Assembly (NCBI GenBank): GCA_025558095.1
Contig: JAIVFI010000001.1
Location: 1,364,001 to 1,428,000, forward strand
Origin: Hyaloraphidium curvatum SAG 235-1
Taxonomy: Eukaryota > Fungi > Monoblepharomycota
Reading direction: 5' to 3'
Length of the DNA stretch: 64,000 nucleotides
The notes under the pieces: generated by a model
Told to the model about the DNA's origin: nothing
Seen by the model: only the letters and a program-made list of their open reading frames with translations
The model's database searches: none
Program-made: the position numbers and the translations under genes
In this document: positions 40,118-46,321 of the stretch, one piece after another
How the letters are laid out: each line of letters opens with the position of its first letter
Position numbering within the stretch: position 1 is the first letter of the stretch

Positions 40118-42012
40118 TCATCTCCGCATCCTCATCCATGCGGCAGCTGCGACGGTCGCGCCAGCAACCACCGCCGCCGTGCCCATCCAACCCCATGACC
40201 TTGGCAGCCTCTCGATCCGCTTCCCGTCCATGCCCACGATGACGTACTTCTCCGCCAGCTCCGGCTCCGACCTCGTCTCCCACCACAGCGACCGCCCGGG
40301 GTACGCGTATGTGGAAGGCCATCGTCCATCTGACCGTCCGTCCGGGTTGTACTGTGAAAGAAGAGGTTGAGTTCACGGTACTCAAAAACTCCCAATGCCA
40401 GCACGCACCCAAGCAGCCACCCCTGCCCAAACCGTCTTCTTCAGGTCCTCCCAGTTTCGCACAGTGTACTCCCACTGCGCGTCCTCCTTGGGCTCGACGC
40501 TCTTGATGCCGTACTTGATCATCTGCCTGATGATGTCTATCACGAGGTCCACCTCGCACTCGAGCACAAAGATAATGCTGGGCGACGGTCAGATTCGTGA
40601 CCTCCGCCGCCGACAGAGCGCGCCCAACCTCGTGTTGATGACCGAGTTCGGGCCGAACAGCATGAAGTAATTCGGAAAGCCGCTCGTCATGATCGTCTTG
40701 TAGTGCGCCGCGAGCTTCTTCTCCCCGGTCACGCGCTGCCACTTCTCCGCCCGGTCCAGGCCCTCCCGGCCGATGATCTTGACCTTGTCTGCCGCGAACG
40801 AGGTCTCGAAGCCTGCAATGGCGAGCATGATGATGAGTGGCGACATTCGATGACGGAAGTCCAAACAAACCGGTGGCCGCAACAATGAGGTCGAACTTCC
40901 TATGCTTCCTCCCGTCCCCTCCCTCCGTCCACACCCCCGTCTCGTCAATCTCCACTATCTTCTCGTCCGCCGCATCCACCAGCTCCGTCCCGGGTCTCTG
41001 CAGGATGTCCAAATACGCCACCTGTGGTATGATCCGCTTGCTCGCGGTCGGGTACGGGGGCGTGAGCCGCTGCCGCAGCTTCGGGTCCGCGATGGCCTCC
41101 TCGTAGTACTTGGAAAACATGTCCGTGACGAGCTTCTGCATGTAGCTGTCCCGGATGTGCACGGACCACGACGCCTCGAGCTGGAAGAAGAACCAGTAGC
41201 GGTGGAGTCGCATGGCGAAGGGAACGTAGCGGAACATCCATTTCTGGAAGTCACTGTAGGGGCGCAGGTCCTTCTTCGGATACCACGTCGACGAGCGCTG
41301 GTAAGACGGTGGGACCAGAATCAGCTTCGGCCTCGGAACACACGAAAGAACCTCGAACCTGGAAAATAGTGAGCTTCCCGACCCGATCCGCAATCTTTTC
41401 GATGATCTGGACGGCGCTGGCGCCCGTCCCAATCACGGCGACGCTCTTCCCCTCCAGGTCCGGCTCCTCTGTCGGCCATCGCGCGGAATGGAGGAGCGGT
41501 CCCTTGAACGTCTCGATACCCGGGATGGCAGGCAGCCGGGGATAGTAGAGCCCGCCGCCGCCGGAAATCAGGATATTGTGCTTGGCGACCAGGATCTTCC
41601 CCTCCCCGCCGGAAGCGGAAGTCCCATCGGCGGGGTGCAGCAGGAAGGTGAGCTCCCAGACGCCCTCGCCGTCGTTCCAGCGTGCCTGCTGGAGCTCATG
41701 CCCGAGCTTGACGTGCTCCATGAGCCCGAACTTGCGGGCCGTGTTGGTCATATACGCTTTGATTTCGTCCGCGTTGGCGTACGTCTGGCTCCAACTGGGG
41801 TTCAGGTCGAAGCTGAAGCTGTAGGCGTGGGACCAGACGTCGCACTGGGCCCCGGGATAGTGGTTGATGTGCCAGGTCCCGCCCACGCCGGCCTCCTTTT
41901 CGTAGAGAGTGAAGTCCTCGACGCCGAGGCGATGCTTGAGCTGGTAGCCCGAGATAATCCCCGCGGCGCCCGCCCCGATGACGGCGATGGACGGGCGGAA
42001 CGCGGTCGGCAT
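40118..42012 (-). CDS. Flavin-containing Baeyer-Villiger-type monooxygenase with C-terminal hydrophobic anchor; ~5 exons
   Basis: IAVIGAGAAG, GGTWHINHYPGAQCD, FKGPLLHSARW fingerprint, VAVIGTGASAVQ, DLIVAATGF, GFPNYFMLFGPNS; ends WGWMGTAAVVAGATVAAAAWMRMRR*. Confidence 0.9.
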
Positions 42013-42160
42013 TTTGCCGCGGCAGCCGGAGGCCGTTTCTGAGGCAGGAGGAGGGAGACACTGGGGGACGTTTGCGCCGACAGTTTAGGCGCGAGACCGA
42101 TTCAGGCTCAAAACTCAGAAAGGAACATCGGTGACCCTTTTCGCAGTACAGTGTAGCAGC

Positions 42161-44943
42161 CTACCGCTTGGCCGCAGAAGCGTCGGCGATTGCCTTATTG
42201 ACCAACGCCTTGCTCGAGTTAACGTGATCGGTCATCTGTGGAGGCGTCGCGTTCAGCTCGAGCCACATTGACCCGCTCACTTCGATCCTCACCCTCGGCT
42301 CGGACGCGTACGGAGCGCAGACCGTCTCAATCTCTGTCCTGCAGGCATCCCAGACGCTCTGGTTGGCACTGGGCGCCCAAATCTTGTCAAGGATGGCCTT
42401 GGTCTGCAGGTCGAGCGTGACGTGGCTCTGCGCCAGGTTCGCGGCGTCGTTCACCGTCCGGCGGCAGTCCGCGGCGTGCTGCGCGAGGAGCGGGTTGGCC
42501 TCGGCGGGGGCCAGCACGGCGTTTGAGTCCGTGCGCAGCTTGTCGATCGCGGCCTGCGTCGTGGGCTGGACGGCGTAGAACTGGTTCAAACAGTTCTGTA
42601 CGTCGCTGTCGAGCTTCTGGTGCGCGGCGGTGTCATAGGCAGCTTGTGCCATGTTGTTCGTCGCGGCGCGGGCGTCGTTGGCGTGCGCAGTCAGCTGCAC
42701 ATCGTGTGAGCAAGTAGACACAGTAGTGCATGATGGAGATCGCACCTCCGGGTTGGCTGCGAAAGCATCCCACAGCGTGTTTGCCTCGGCCTTGAGGGAA
42801 TCCACCTGAGGGAGGTTGGTTCCGGCCGCAGCGAAAGCCGTCTCGTAGTGCTTGACCGAGTCGTCGATCCTCTTGTGTTCCGACGCCAGCGACGAGGTGT
42901 TGTTTGCCGCCGCGACCGCAGCATCCACGGTCTTGCGGGACTCGGCGGCGTGCTCCGTGAGCTGCGTGCCCAGCAAGAGATGAACACCGTGGATATCGAG
43001 ACCTCCCGCCCTTCCTTACCGCAGGGTTCTGCTCGGCAGTAGCTAGAATGGCATCAGCCTGCGCCTTGAGCTGGTTGATGGCATCCGGAGTGATTCCGGG
43101 CTGCGACAGGCCGACGACGATTGCGGTAATGTCCTTGTCGAGCTGCTCGTGCGCGGCCTTATCGTAGCCTGCCTGCGCCATCGACTCGATGCTTTTTCGG
43201 GCCTCGGCGACGTGGGCAGTCATCTGCAGCATGCTCGTCAGCATAGAAGGGGGGGAGGAACGTTTGCGCACACTGACCGCAGGGGTCGGGGTCCCCGCCG
43301 CGAAACTGTCAACGAACGCCAGCCCTTCCGCCTTCAGACGGTCTATCTCGGGGATGTTCGTCCCCGCGGCCGCAAAGGCGGCGTCGTACGCCTTGACGCC
43401 CTCGTCCAACCGCTTGTGCTCGGCATCCTCGTTGGTGGCCTGCTGGGCCGAAGCCACAGCCGAGTCCACGGCGCGCCTGCAGTCGGCCGCGTGGTCCTTG
43501 AGCTGCAAACGCCCCTCAGCAACAGGCGGCAAAGATCGCCTCGAAGCACCTACGACAGGGTTCTTCTCCGCGGTCGCCAGAATCGCGTTGGCCTGGTTCT
43601 GGAGGTCCGTGATCGTGGCCGCCGGCAGGGGGCCGGGCGCCGCCAGGGCGAGCAAGATCTTGGAGATGTCAGCGTCCAGCTGCGCGTGGGCGGAGGAGTC
43701 CACGGCTCCCTGCACCGCGGCGTCGACGGCCTTGCGTCCGTCCTCGCAGTGCGCCCTGAGCTGGATCAGCGCAAGGGGATCAGCTCCAGAAGACCGAGAC
43801 GCCCCTCGGATCGCTCACGCTCGGGTTGCGGGCAGCCGTTTCGTTGAACGTCACGTACGCTTCCTCCTTGATCTTGTTTACCTCCTCGAGGTTGGTCCCC
43901 GCGGCCGTGATCTGGGCCACGTACGACTGAATCTGAGCGTCGAGGTGGGCGTGCGCAGCAGCATCCTGCGCGCTGTTGAGGGCCTGGTTGATGGCCTGGT
44001 CCATGACCGCCTTGGCGTCCTTGGCGTGGGCTTTTGTCTGCGCGGGAACTCTGTCAGCAAGGTCGCACGACGGCGCGAGACGTGGAGCCCACGGATTCGT
44101 TCTGGAGGGGAGCCTCGACCGCCTTAGCTGCCTCATCTTTGCAACGGTAGATCGCGGTCGTGTCCGAGCCAGCAGCCGCCACCTTTTGCAGAATATCCTG
44201 GGTATCGGTGTCCAATTTCGCGTGCATGGCATTGTCGAGGGTCATCATGGCCTCAGCCACGTAGCGCTTGCCGTCATTCGCGTGGTCGATGAGCTAGACG
44301 TCCGACGCTCATGTTCAGCGGAGAACAGTTATCCAAGGCACCCAGGACGACTTACAGCAGGGTTCTGGCACGCCTTCTCGAAGACCTGCGCGGACTCGAT
44401 CTGCACCTTCTTGACCTCGTCCATGTCCGTCGGGTTCGGAGGGGTGTTCTTGGCCAAAGTCTCCTGGTAACGCTTGATGTCCCTATTTGCAAAGATCTTG
44501 GGTCAAGAATCCACTCGACCGTCCGGTAGCTTACGCATCCAACTGGGCGTGCCCGGCGGCATCGATGGCCTCCTGATCCGGCCCACCCGGAACGGTCGGC
44601 GGCGGGTTGGTCACGCCCGGGTCGCCCGACCGCGGGATCTTGACGACCTGGCCGACCTGGAGGGCCTCGGGCTTGACCCCTGGCGGCAGGCGGGCCCGCA
44701 GCACGACGCCGGCGGATAGACCAGACCAGACCAGACCAGCACGTCAGCGCCGCGGTCCATAGAGGCATAGACGGCGAACGGACCGGGATTCGCCTTGACG
44801 ATGGCATCGACGGTGGTCTGGTAGCGCTCCGCGAGCTTCGTGAAGGTGTCGCCCGGCTGCGCGGTGGCGGGCCTCATCAGGAGCTCCGCCGGCCCGGAAT
44901 CGCGAATGAGACCCACCGCAATCGTGTGGTCGATCGTGGCCAT
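42161..44943 (-). CDS. LysM-domain protein with nine His-containing helical repeats; 12 exons
   Basis: Spliced LysM HTIAPGDTFTKLAERYQTTVDAIVKANPGVKPEALQVGQVVKIP; then repeats D..aH..LD..i......aaG.....I..lk..a..........NP.|L..H..D.R; 11 GT..AG introns restore one frame. Confidence 0.85.
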
Positions 44944-45376
44944 CGGAATCGTCGGCCCTGTTTGCGGATTCAAATGCGGAAACGGACCCCGGTTTGTCAC
45001 GGAAGGAAGGACCCGCGCCCGACGACCCTGACGGCGGGAGATGGCCGCCACCCGTCCGACGAATTCCGCTAATCTCCGTCCATCGGCGACAATAAAGAAT
45101 CTTATTTTGACTTCAAGGAGTCGCAGGATCAAGTTCCGGCGACAGCATCACTTCCAGGTATCGGATCGCATGAATGACGCGTCGTGGCACCGAAACCCAC
45201 CGCTGTCCGCCACGGCCGAACGGATGAAATGTAAAGGCACTCATCTTCTTTATCTTGGACCTGATCGATGTCGAGAAGTTCTGCAGTCGAAGCGATCGCG
45301 GTCAACCTGGAGTTGTCTCCCGCGGAGTTGAGCCATCACGCGGCCTCCCACAACTCATCTCCACGAATCCGGCGGG

Positions 45377-46321
45377 ATGGCTTCCGCGGCACGAATTCCG
45401 TACGATGAGCTCGGCCTTTTCCACGAGAACGCGGCGGAATACGGCCTGCCCTTCGGCTCGCCCCCCGCGGTGCGCCGCGAGTCCGTCGCCCTGCCGGACG
45501 GCCGCTCCCTTTCCGCGCTCGCGTGGGGCACCGGTCCGCCCGAAATCGTGTTCCTGCACGGCGGGGGACAGAACGCCCACACGTGGGATACAGTCGCCCT
45601 GGCGCTGCGGCCCCGTTCGCTGCTGTGCGTGGACCTCCCCGGCCACGGCCACTCGGACGGCCCGGGCGACGCGCAGAAAGGCGGCGCGGGCCCCGTCGGC
45701 GCGGCGGCGGACGTCGAAGTGGTCGTCAGGAAGCTCGCACCCGACGCCAAGGGGGTCGTCGGCATGTCGTACGGCGGGATGACGGCGGTCGCGCTGGCCG
45801 ACCGCGCGCCGGACCTGGTGCGCAAGCTCGTGCTCGTGGACGTGCTCCCGGGCCTCGAGGGCGGCCGCGGCAAGCACATCGTCGAGTTCATCAACGGACC
45901 GCCGACGTTCCCGACGTTCGACGACATCCTCGCCAGGACGATCAAGTACAACCCCACACGGTCGGAATCGAGCCTCCGCAGGGGCATCCTGCACAACGCG
46001 GTGCAGCTCGAGGACGGGAGCTGGGTGTGGCGGCATTCGCGGTGGCGGATCGCCGAGACGGAGGCGAAGCAGACGGAGGCAGGGGCCGACAAGCCACGGC
46101 CGATCGCGGCCGACCTGCTCGGTGCTCTCGGCAAGATCAAGGTGCCGGTGCTTCTCGCGCGGGGGATGAGGCCGGACTCGGTGCTGCGCGACGACGACGA
46201 GGAGAGGCTGAAGCAGGCGCTGCCCTCGGCCGAGGTGCTCCGTTTCCAGGAGGCCGGGCATTCCATCCAGGGCGACATGCCGGTGGAGCTGGCCAAGGCT
46301 ATCGGCGACTTCATCGGGTGA
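45377..46321 (+). CDS. Alpha/beta-fold hydrolase, intronless
   Basis: VFLHGGGQNAHTWD, VDLPGHGHS, VGMSYGG nucleophile, AGHSIQGD catalytic His. Confidence 0.9.
   Translation: MASAARIPYDELGLFHENAAEYGLPFGSPPAVRRESVALPDGRSLSALAWGTGPPEIVFLHGGGQNAHTWDTVALALRPRSLLCVDLPGHGHSDGPGDAQKGGAGPVGAAADVEVVVRKLAPDAKGVVGMSYGGMTAVALADRAPDLVRKLVLVDVLPGLEGGRGKHIVEFINGPPTFPTFDDILARTIKYNPTRSESSLRRGILHNAVQLEDGSWVWRHSRWRIAETEAKQTEAGADKPRPIAADLLGALGKIKVPVLLARGMRPDSVLRDDDEERLKQALPSAEVLRFQEAGHSIQGDMPVELAKAIGDFIG

Follow-up and report, generated by a model that had tools for sequence, protein, structure and literature searches.

The window analysed here is a 64,000-nt stretch of the genome of Hyaloraphidium curvatum SAG 235-1, an early-diverging (monoblepharid) fungus (GenBank assembly GCA_025558095.1, contig JAIVFI010000001.1, positions 1,364,001 to 1,428,000 of the forward strand). 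Its minus strand carries, at positions 42161–44943 of the window, a gene encoding a protein of 706 amino acids (aa), which begins with a LysM domain and continues with nine diverged helical repeats marked by recurrent His/Asp motifs. The first-pass annotation, made from the DNA letters without database searches, had read this architecture from a gene with 11 introns, although the list of open reading frames (ORFs) shows it only as unrelated fragments, and had proposed that the repeat is a new metal-binding domain.

The LysM–repeat gene and its transcript

The region 42161–44943 (minus strand) is one gene, since a single spliced RNA contig links the LysM-coding part with all the repeats. The contig comes from a public RNA run (labelled ‘RNA?’), in which 62% of the words sampled from the stretch occur; its contigs were compared with positions 41500–45800. 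The contig is 2587 nt in length, has a depth of 81, spans 42128–45354 on the minus strand and contains 11 joints, all of which read CT..AC on the plus strand and hence GT..AG in the direction of the gene. As a contig from which 11 consensus introns are precisely missing has no other possible source, the run is read as spliced RNA. Ten introns were derived from the splice-site contexts in the minus-strand frames, and all ten are seen in the RNA contig. The eleventh, located inside the LysM-coding part (44916–44857), was revealed by the RNA contig and gives the LysM motif its canonical start. The predicted number of introns is thus borne out, all of them being of the GT-AG type. A path with the minimal number of introns (a five-intron model) was dropped as biologically wrong; consensus splice sites were preferred and later confirmed by RNA.

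The coding region starts with the ATG at 44943 and ends with the stop codon at 42163–42161; it consists of 12 exons and has no internal stop. The untranslated regions (UTRs) on the RNA contig are about 411 nt (5′) and about 33 nt (3′) in length, and sequencing-adapter letters are found at the 42128 end. The 5′ UTR (44944–45354, minus strand) holds an upstream ORF of 43 codons with the ATG at 45244. The features of the gene, with the evidence for each, are as follows:

42128–45354, minus strand: extent of the spliced RNA contig (2587 nt, 11 joints)
42161–44943, minus strand: coding region, 12 exons, 706 aa (splice reading and RNA contig)
44917–44943, minus strand: exon 1, aa 1–9, start of LysM; then intron 1, 44916–44857 (RNA joint 44856/44917)
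44784–44856, minus strand: exon 2, middle of LysM; then intron 2, 44783–44680 (RNA; LysM E-value 1.8e-6 for the exon alone)
44535–44679, minus strand: exon 3, end of LysM (to aa 49), Pro/Gly-rich linker (aa 50–71), and the first HAQLD; then intron 3, 44534–44483 (RNA, Pfam)
44356–44482, minus strand: exon 4, remainder of bundle 1 to the NPA turn; then intron 4, 44355–44294 (RNA)
44093–44293, minus strand: exon 5, repeat unit 1 (HAND ... HAKLD ... NES); then intron 5, 44092–44038 (RNA, repeat alignment)
43819–44037, minus strand: exon 6, repeat unit 2, A type; then intron 6, 43818–43761 (RNA, repeat alignment)
43554–43760, minus strand: exon 7, repeat unit 3, B type; then intron 7, 43553–43503 (RNA, repeat alignment)
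43278–43502, minus strand: exon 8, repeat unit 4, A type; then intron 8, 43277–43224 (RNA, repeat alignment)
43020–43223, minus strand: exon 9, repeat unit 5, B type; then intron 9, 43019–42962 (RNA, repeat alignment)
42746–42961, minus strand: exon 10, repeat unit 6, A type; then intron 10, 42745–42695 (RNA, repeat alignment)
42293–42694, minus strand: exon 11, repeat units 7 and 8, uninterrupted by an intron; then intron 11, 42292–42236 (RNA, repeat alignment)
42161–42235, minus strand: exon 12, last helix (HVNS), predicted to close bundle 9, and the stop codon (RNA, helices of the predicted structure)

The public annotation wrongly cuts this one gene into two. It lists KAI9034623.1 (DFJ74DRAFT_650022) and KAI9034622.1 (DFJ74DRAFT_650020), both described as ‘hypothetical protein’ of Hyaloraphidium curvatum. 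The first (203 aa) corresponds to exons 1–5, leaves intron 5 unspliced, reads into it at 44092 and stops inside it. The second (298 aa) begins with the opening codon of exon 9 (43223) and is an exact C-terminal suffix of the 706-aa model. Exons 6–8 are genuine repeat units and are left out of both. The possibility that two or three separate genes encode the LysM domain and the repeats, for which these two distinct NCBI products (exons 1–5 into intron 5, and exons 9–12) are the argument, is barely credible, given that the RNA contig passes every junction, including both annotation break points (43278/43223 and 44093/44037), that the reading frame is open across all 12 exons, and that the repeat units of exons 6–8 are missing from both annotated models. 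An expressed, spliced single gene with this architecture is very probable, and the claim of one gene in place of ORF fragments holds.

Four of the eleven introns (43553–43503, 43277–43224, 42745–42695, and 42292–42236) have lengths of 51, 54, 51, and 57 nt, which are multiples of three, and are free of stops; the raw ORF track therefore reads through them (ORFs 42633–43715 and 42161–42976). Keeping any of these introns would add 17–19 residues at the Asn-Pro (NP) turn of the repeats, with the frame intact. Another RNA contig of the same run leaves the match to the window at 44738, in intron 2, and the 255 letters that follow do not resemble the window; this contig may be a chimera or represent a rare alternative form.

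LysM domain and the nine repeats

Residues 6–49 match positions 1–43 of the Pfam LysM profile (PF01476) with 49.4 bits against a cut-off of 20.9 (E-value 4.4e-13, KAI9034623.1), and single exons alone score 28 bits. Fungal LysM domains have been divided into a ‘fungal/bacterial’ class and a four-cysteine ‘fungal-specific’ class (PMC4392113). The LysM found here is free of cysteine and, by this feature of its sequence, is of the former class and not of the latter. As a family, LysM domains bind polymers of N-acetylglucosamine (GlcNAc) (PMC4392113). The nearest LysM sequences are 48–65% identical to that of H. curvatum, and two of them carry a lytic-transglycosylase domain. The genome contains at least six other LysM-encoding places, located on contigs C8, C9, C12, and C23, none of which has the helical repeat; the best of them is C8:369956–370075, and two adjacent LysM matches were found on C8.

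Neither a signal peptide nor a transmembrane segment was found, as the first-pass annotation had stated. The N-terminus is polar (mean Kyte-Doolittle value of −0.2 over 20 aa), the most hydrophobic 19-aa window of the 706-aa protein scores 1.43 on the same scale, and the C-terminus (…ASAAKR) lacks a hydrophobic tail. Within the contiguous 5′ exon of the RNA contig, no in-frame ATG precedes the one at 44943. The likeness to other fungal LysM proteins, such as the effectors Ecp6 and Slp1 and the subgroup C chitinases (PMC4392113), consists in a LysM of the cysteine-free class. In contrast to them, the H. curvatum protein has a single LysM, no signal peptide, no cysteines, and 706 aa with a helical rod; with one LysM in 706 aa and no signal peptide, it is not a member of the secreted fungal LysM effectors. 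Its place in the cell could be either the cytosol or, through unconventional export, the chitin wall.

The Pro/Gly linker is 22 aa in length (aa 50–71). In the register that begins a few residues ahead of the HxxLD motif, nine complete units of 66–73 aa extend from just past the linker to the C-terminus. All eighteen His/Asp motifs exist in the spliced model exactly as they had been listed. The HxxL/I-D motif is present in nine of nine units (His 77, 148, 220, 289, 362, 433, 505, 573, and 639), and so is the second motif, which reads HAND, HAKD, HCED, HAAD, HVAE, HAAE, HAND, HAAD, and HVNS (His 128 to 686). The second motif is preceded by an NPx turn in seven of nine cases, in agreement with the NP turn described as typical, and by TPA and EPR in the other two. 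The two motif positions account for 18 of the 21 histidines of the protein, which is rich in alanine (149 of 706 residues).

For the repeat alignment, eight exon-units, numbered as in the list of features, were placed on 68 match columns. The pairwise identity between units is 18–53%, and no column is invariant except H4, H29, and D33; when residues were shuffled within rows 5000 times, invariant columns arose at a mean of 0.0004 per shuffle. The +3 position of the HxxD/E histidine is acidic (Asp or Glu) in each of the eight exon-units and Ser in the ninth motif (HVNS, exon 12), and the residue four positions after the same histidine is always small (G, A, C, or S). The strong divergence of the nine repeats outside these positions, which had also been noted, is thus confirmed. 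The invariance of H, H, and D and the acidic character of the fourth position in eight of nine units, at identities of 18–53%, imply that precisely these residues are under selection. Exon 11 is similar to two other exons (E-values of 3e-9 and 3e-8), and the homology of the repeats is consequently real.

Two types of units can be distinguished. The B-type units 3, 5, and 7 are 41–44% identical among themselves, the A-type units 4 and 6 are 53% identical, and most A-versus-B pairs are 22–33% identical. All introns between units are in phase 0 and are placed right after the NPx turn. This arrangement fits an origin of the units by duplication of symmetric phase-0 exons, partly as A+B pairs.

Predicted fold and comparison with known families

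An AlphaFold2 (AF2) model of the C-terminal 298 aa (KAI9034622.1, no alignment) has a mean predicted local distance difference test (pLDDT) value of 91.8 (87.6–91.8 in the five models) and a predicted template modelling (pTM) score of 0.65. In the numbering of KAI9034622.1, long helices of 35–48 aa (2–39, 67–114, 139–180, 211–245, and 273–297) alternate with short helices of 18–20 aa (46–64, 118–136, 187–206, and 252–269). The HxxD/E histidine is located 2–5 residues past the start of each long helix, and the HxxLD histidine lies 18–25 residues further on the same helix. From this helix pattern and the positions of the histidines, each bundle combines the back half of one long helix with the short helix after it and the front half of the long helix that follows. 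With high confidence, the units are predicted to be up-down-up three-helix bundles of about 70 aa, in which neighbours share one continuous helix and together form a rod. The same topology had been assumed for the nine units in the first-pass annotation, and both the model and the superpositions given below agree with it. One detail has to be corrected. The HxxLD histidine had been assigned to the start of the first helix; in the model it lies midway along a continuous long helix common to two bundles, near the start of the half that forms its own bundle, so that the register stands. If straight, the rod would be roughly 25–30 nm in length (about 3 nm per bundle, with helices of about 20 residues and a rise of 1.5 Å per residue). 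A single-sequence AF2 model of the N-terminal 189 aa (KAI9034623.1, residues 1–189) has a pLDDT of 45.7 and no strands; LysM and bundles 1 and 2 are poorly modelled, and this model is of no use for judging the beta-alpha-alpha-beta fold typical of LysM.

The heights of the histidines were obtained by counting residues from the DSSP helix ends, with 1.5 Å per residue. The histidine of the first helix is 14–17 residues above the loop between the first and second helices (the a-b loop), the short helix has 18–20 residues, and the histidine of the third helix is 2–5 residues below the top. In all four modelled bundles, both histidines are therefore predicted to be level with each other to within about one turn. 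Across the nine units, the first-helix histidine lies 2–82 degrees (median 30) to one side of the hydrophobic moment, and the third-helix histidine lies 18–75 degrees (median 44) to the opposite side. The former is followed by Leu at +3 and Asp at +4, and owing to this Leu it is a core-type position; the latter is followed by Asp or Glu at +3 and the small residue at +4, which points into the core. From these values, we infer that the histidines lie on the edge of the hydrophobic face and form a layer at the bundle end next to the conserved a-b loop of the preceding bundle. The geometry fits a meeting of the two histidines in one layer at the interface of the first and third helices (a-c), each supported by a carboxylate one helical turn later. 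The claim that both His motifs sit at the same end of the bundle is supported by the helix boundaries and the hydrophobic-moment analysis.

Searches for relatives were performed with single exons and with KAI9034622.1 and KAI9034623.1, exons 6–8 being searched exon by exon. No Pfam family gave a significant match to any repeat exon or to KAI9034622.1 at E-values up to 10; profiles of hemerythrin HHE, ferritin-like proteins, PhoU, and CHAD gave no match to any exon or to KAI9034622.1 in the same range. Among 1.84 billion representative proteins, the repeat profile found only KAI9034622.1 and KAI9034623.1 below 1e-10. Two marginal matches (E-values 2e-6 and 5e-5; 743 and 162 aa), a coiled-coil protein with a 38-aa period and a TPR-containing repeat, were rejected as chance matches to the H..LD helix. 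In the H. curvatum genome (31.9 Mb, 55 contigs), the profile detects only the eight exons of this gene at E-values up to 1. A metagenome scan with KAI9034622.1 matched 156 patterns, none of which was confirmed, and a word-based protein search with exons 7–9 returned only the gene’s own annotated piece. Against all PDB sequences, the best profile match was the helical linker of the haem-uptake protein IsdB (E-value 0.14, not significant). Foldseek found nothing in the PDB at E-values of 0.001 or below, its best rows being spectrin repeats at non-significant E-values. In the ESM-Atlas shape search, all template modelling values by query were at most 0.43, and the best score for the language-model features of the atlas was 0.83, with low recognition; below 0.9, such scores count only as leads. 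Neither this protein nor a fungal LysM with a three-helix rod was found described in the literature.

Single units of the model (residues 90–160, 91–163, 226–296, and 228–298) were superposed with VIA-align on small three-helix bundles with a root-mean-square deviation (rmsd) of 1.6–2.1 Å and Z of 9–10, and two units (11–167) on two spectrin repeats with an rmsd of 3.2–3.8 Å over 157 residues and Z of 8.1–8.6. By the calibration of VIA-align, helical repeats with Z below about 13 may share no more than a common arrangement, so these superpositions are read as a fold class (a short spectrin-like or Ebh-like rod) and not as kinship. The suggestion of a new repeat domain is thus correct in one part. 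In the collections searched, the sequence family is new, has neither a characterised Pfam family nor homologues, and is confined to one gene of one species; its fold is not new and belongs to an ordinary class, a chain of short spectrin-like bundles (Z 8–10). The family is accordingly a variant of the spectrin-like three-helix rod, represented by a singleton gene.

Spectrin arrays (PF00435; PDB 3fb2, 1u5p, 1cun, and 3edv) share with the H. curvatum repeats the up-down-up bundles and the last helix that continues as the first helix of the next bundle. This joining by a continuous helix is seen in the AF2 model as a resemblance of architecture, and the repeats are not members of PF00435, with no Pfam match at E-values up to 10 and with units of 66–73 aa instead of about 106. 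The identity in the superpositions is 4–11%, and the Z values can be reached by helical proteins through the common arrangement alone. The conserved positions of spectrin are hydrophobic (Trp), whereas those of the H. curvatum units are His and Asp.

The Ebh-type rods of Gram-positive bacteria (FIVAR PF07554, GA, and DUF1542) consist of three-helix bundles of about 60–70 aa with a two-module super-period and shared long helices. Modules of this type occur in cell-wall-associated proteins, some of them with LysM, and protein A combines three-helix bundles with LysM. The likeness by language-model features is weak (0.76 for FIVAR clusters and 0.79 for DUF1542, under the 0.9 level of a lead). A GA-like score was obtained for one exon only (12.4 bits at a cut-off of 25), and FIVAR was not reported for any exon, so the repeats are not members of these families. 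In addition, the bacterial proteins are secreted, wall-anchored, and have no His/His/Asp signature, while the H. curvatum gene is eukaryotic and contains 11 introns.

Metal sites on helices are known from the three-helix repeats of PhoU, with E/DxxxD metal-cluster motifs, and from the four-helix bundles of hemerythrin HHE and ferritin-like proteins with ExxH. The likeness to such proteins is in the His and carboxylate residues spaced i/i+3 or i/i+4 on bundle helices and repeated in each bundle. No sequence match to PhoU, hemerythrin, or ferritin-like proteins exists, however, and the number of helices or the ligand set differs. One unit of the model can be superposed on PDB 2mtq, a designed three-helix metal binder (69 aa, rmsd of 3.1 Å, Z of 8.6), but this indicates the generic fold only.

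Possible function and neighbouring genes

We think that the protein is a glycan-tethered rod. LysM would anchor the rod on chitin or another polymer that contains GlcNAc, and in each bundle the conserved site of two histidines and two carboxylates would take up a divalent, Zn-like metal. The metal could act as a staple that stiffens the bundle and the junction, or the sites could form a multivalent metal-binding surface. Taken as a whole, this is the best explanation at present, with a probability of roughly 40%. The argument for a chemically specific site is that two histidines and two carboxylates are kept while the units drift to 18–53% identity. On its own, the interpretation of the His/acid tetrad as a putative site for a divalent metal or another ligand is tentative, and we place it slightly before a metal-free role of the same residues.

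Several points weigh against the glycan-tethered metal rod. Two histidines with carboxylates make up a ligand set of minimal size, and in the last unit the acid is replaced by Ser (HVNS). Invariant polar residues can be purely structural and set the register of the helices. The opposite angular offsets of the two histidines equally fit an arrangement in which both face the short middle helix. The rod itself comes from single-sequence AF2 with a pTM of only 0.65, which makes its straightness uncertain, and the N-terminal third is the poorly modelled part. There are no orthologues, and the conservation is that of paralogous repeats within one protein. Finally, a location in the cytosol would hold LysM away from chitin.

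The strongest alternative is a metal-free polar lock, that is, a buried or semi-buried hydrogen-bonded cluster in which each histidine is paired with the carboxylate of its own helix and the two histidines pack together. Such a cluster would set the register of the bundle, lock the junction, and stop nine Ala-rich units from mispairing; it could also confer pH-sensitivity near the pKa of histidine. By established helix chemistry, His(i) shares a helix face with Asp(i+4) and likewise with Asp/Glu(i+3). The histidines adjoin the junction between bundles and face the a-b loop of the unit before, which is conserved (AAAGTN in A-type and PG-containing in B-type units), AF2 folds KAI9034622.1 confidently with no metal, and the last unit tolerates Ser. 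On the other hand, the core and junction positions of helical repeats are usually hydrophobic, and two invariant histidines with an invariant Asp at such low identities are unusual for a purely structural role. The small residues four positions after the third-helix histidine provide space in the core of the kind found around a bound ion. The data for the metal site also agree with a structural or pH-sensing role of the cluster that involves no metal. Considering both sides, we regard the metal-free lock as somewhat unlikely.

A bolder form of the metal reading is that the unit of about 70 aa is a previously unknown eukaryotic module, metal-binding or self-assembling through metal bridges, with nine candidate His2-(Asp/Glu)2 sites about 3 nm apart, fastened to chitin by LysM. 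This is unlikely; if true, it would provide a polyvalent metal store, a sensor, or a metal-dependent ‘zipper’ at or under the fungal wall.

Less probable again is a young, species-restricted orphan, the exon-duplicated repeats of which have as yet no specific biochemical function and have inherited His and Asp from the founder unit. In its favour, the gene has no second copy in the genome and no counterpart in any database searched, and its idealised, Ala-rich, designable sequence is folded by AF2 from a single sequence. Against mere inheritance stands the selection implied by the invariant H, H, and D and by the acidic fourth position discussed above. Moreover, the gene is transcribed and fully spliced, and its contig has a depth of 81 versus 2–3 for the downstream neighbour, although contig depth is a poor measure of expression.

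It is improbable that the paired histidines are axial ligands of haem or another cofactor, or half-sites sharing a metal between two rods and thereby zipping them. In the Zn-dependent ‘zinc zipper’ of the staphylococcal Aap and SasG repeats, the pairing between molecules is driven by metal. Nine equally spaced identical sites on a rod, each with two histidines, which is an incomplete ligand set for one chain, would suit such roles, and the best PDB profile match, although not significant, is the IsdB linker. At the same time, evidence of self-association was neither looked for nor seen, a three-helix bundle with helices of 20 residues has no obvious haem pocket, and the matches to IsdB and to a designed Zn-filament are at chance level.

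If the tetrad binds metal in the glycan-tethered rod, the repeat would be a compact, highly designable natural module with a regular array of identical sites, and the protein would be a rare LysM protein that is neither an enzyme, nor a receptor, nor a secreted effector. Without metal too, the gene cleanly exemplifies how exon duplication can build a gene restricted to one species, its structure amends the public annotation in which it is cut in two, and it indicates that LysM proteins with no signal peptide can carry long structural rods in early-diverging fungi. The reach of these conclusions is limited to a family known from a single gene of a single, little-studied species.

The gene has neighbours on both sides. 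Downstream, an exon of a flavin monooxygenase (FMO)-like gene is located at 41251–42012 on the minus strand (PF00743, E-value 2e-11). Upstream, a divergent alpha/beta-hydrolase gene occupies 45349–46321 on the plus strand (ORF 45377–46321, Abhydrolase_1, E-value 5e-24). The depths of the RNA contigs (81 for the LysM gene, 2–3 for the FMO-like gene, and 358 for the hydrolase) poorly reflect the level of expression. The hydrolase contig begins at 45349 with an adapter mark, 6 nt inside the end of the LysM-gene contig (45354), and these two ends indicate head-to-head transcripts that touch or overlap.

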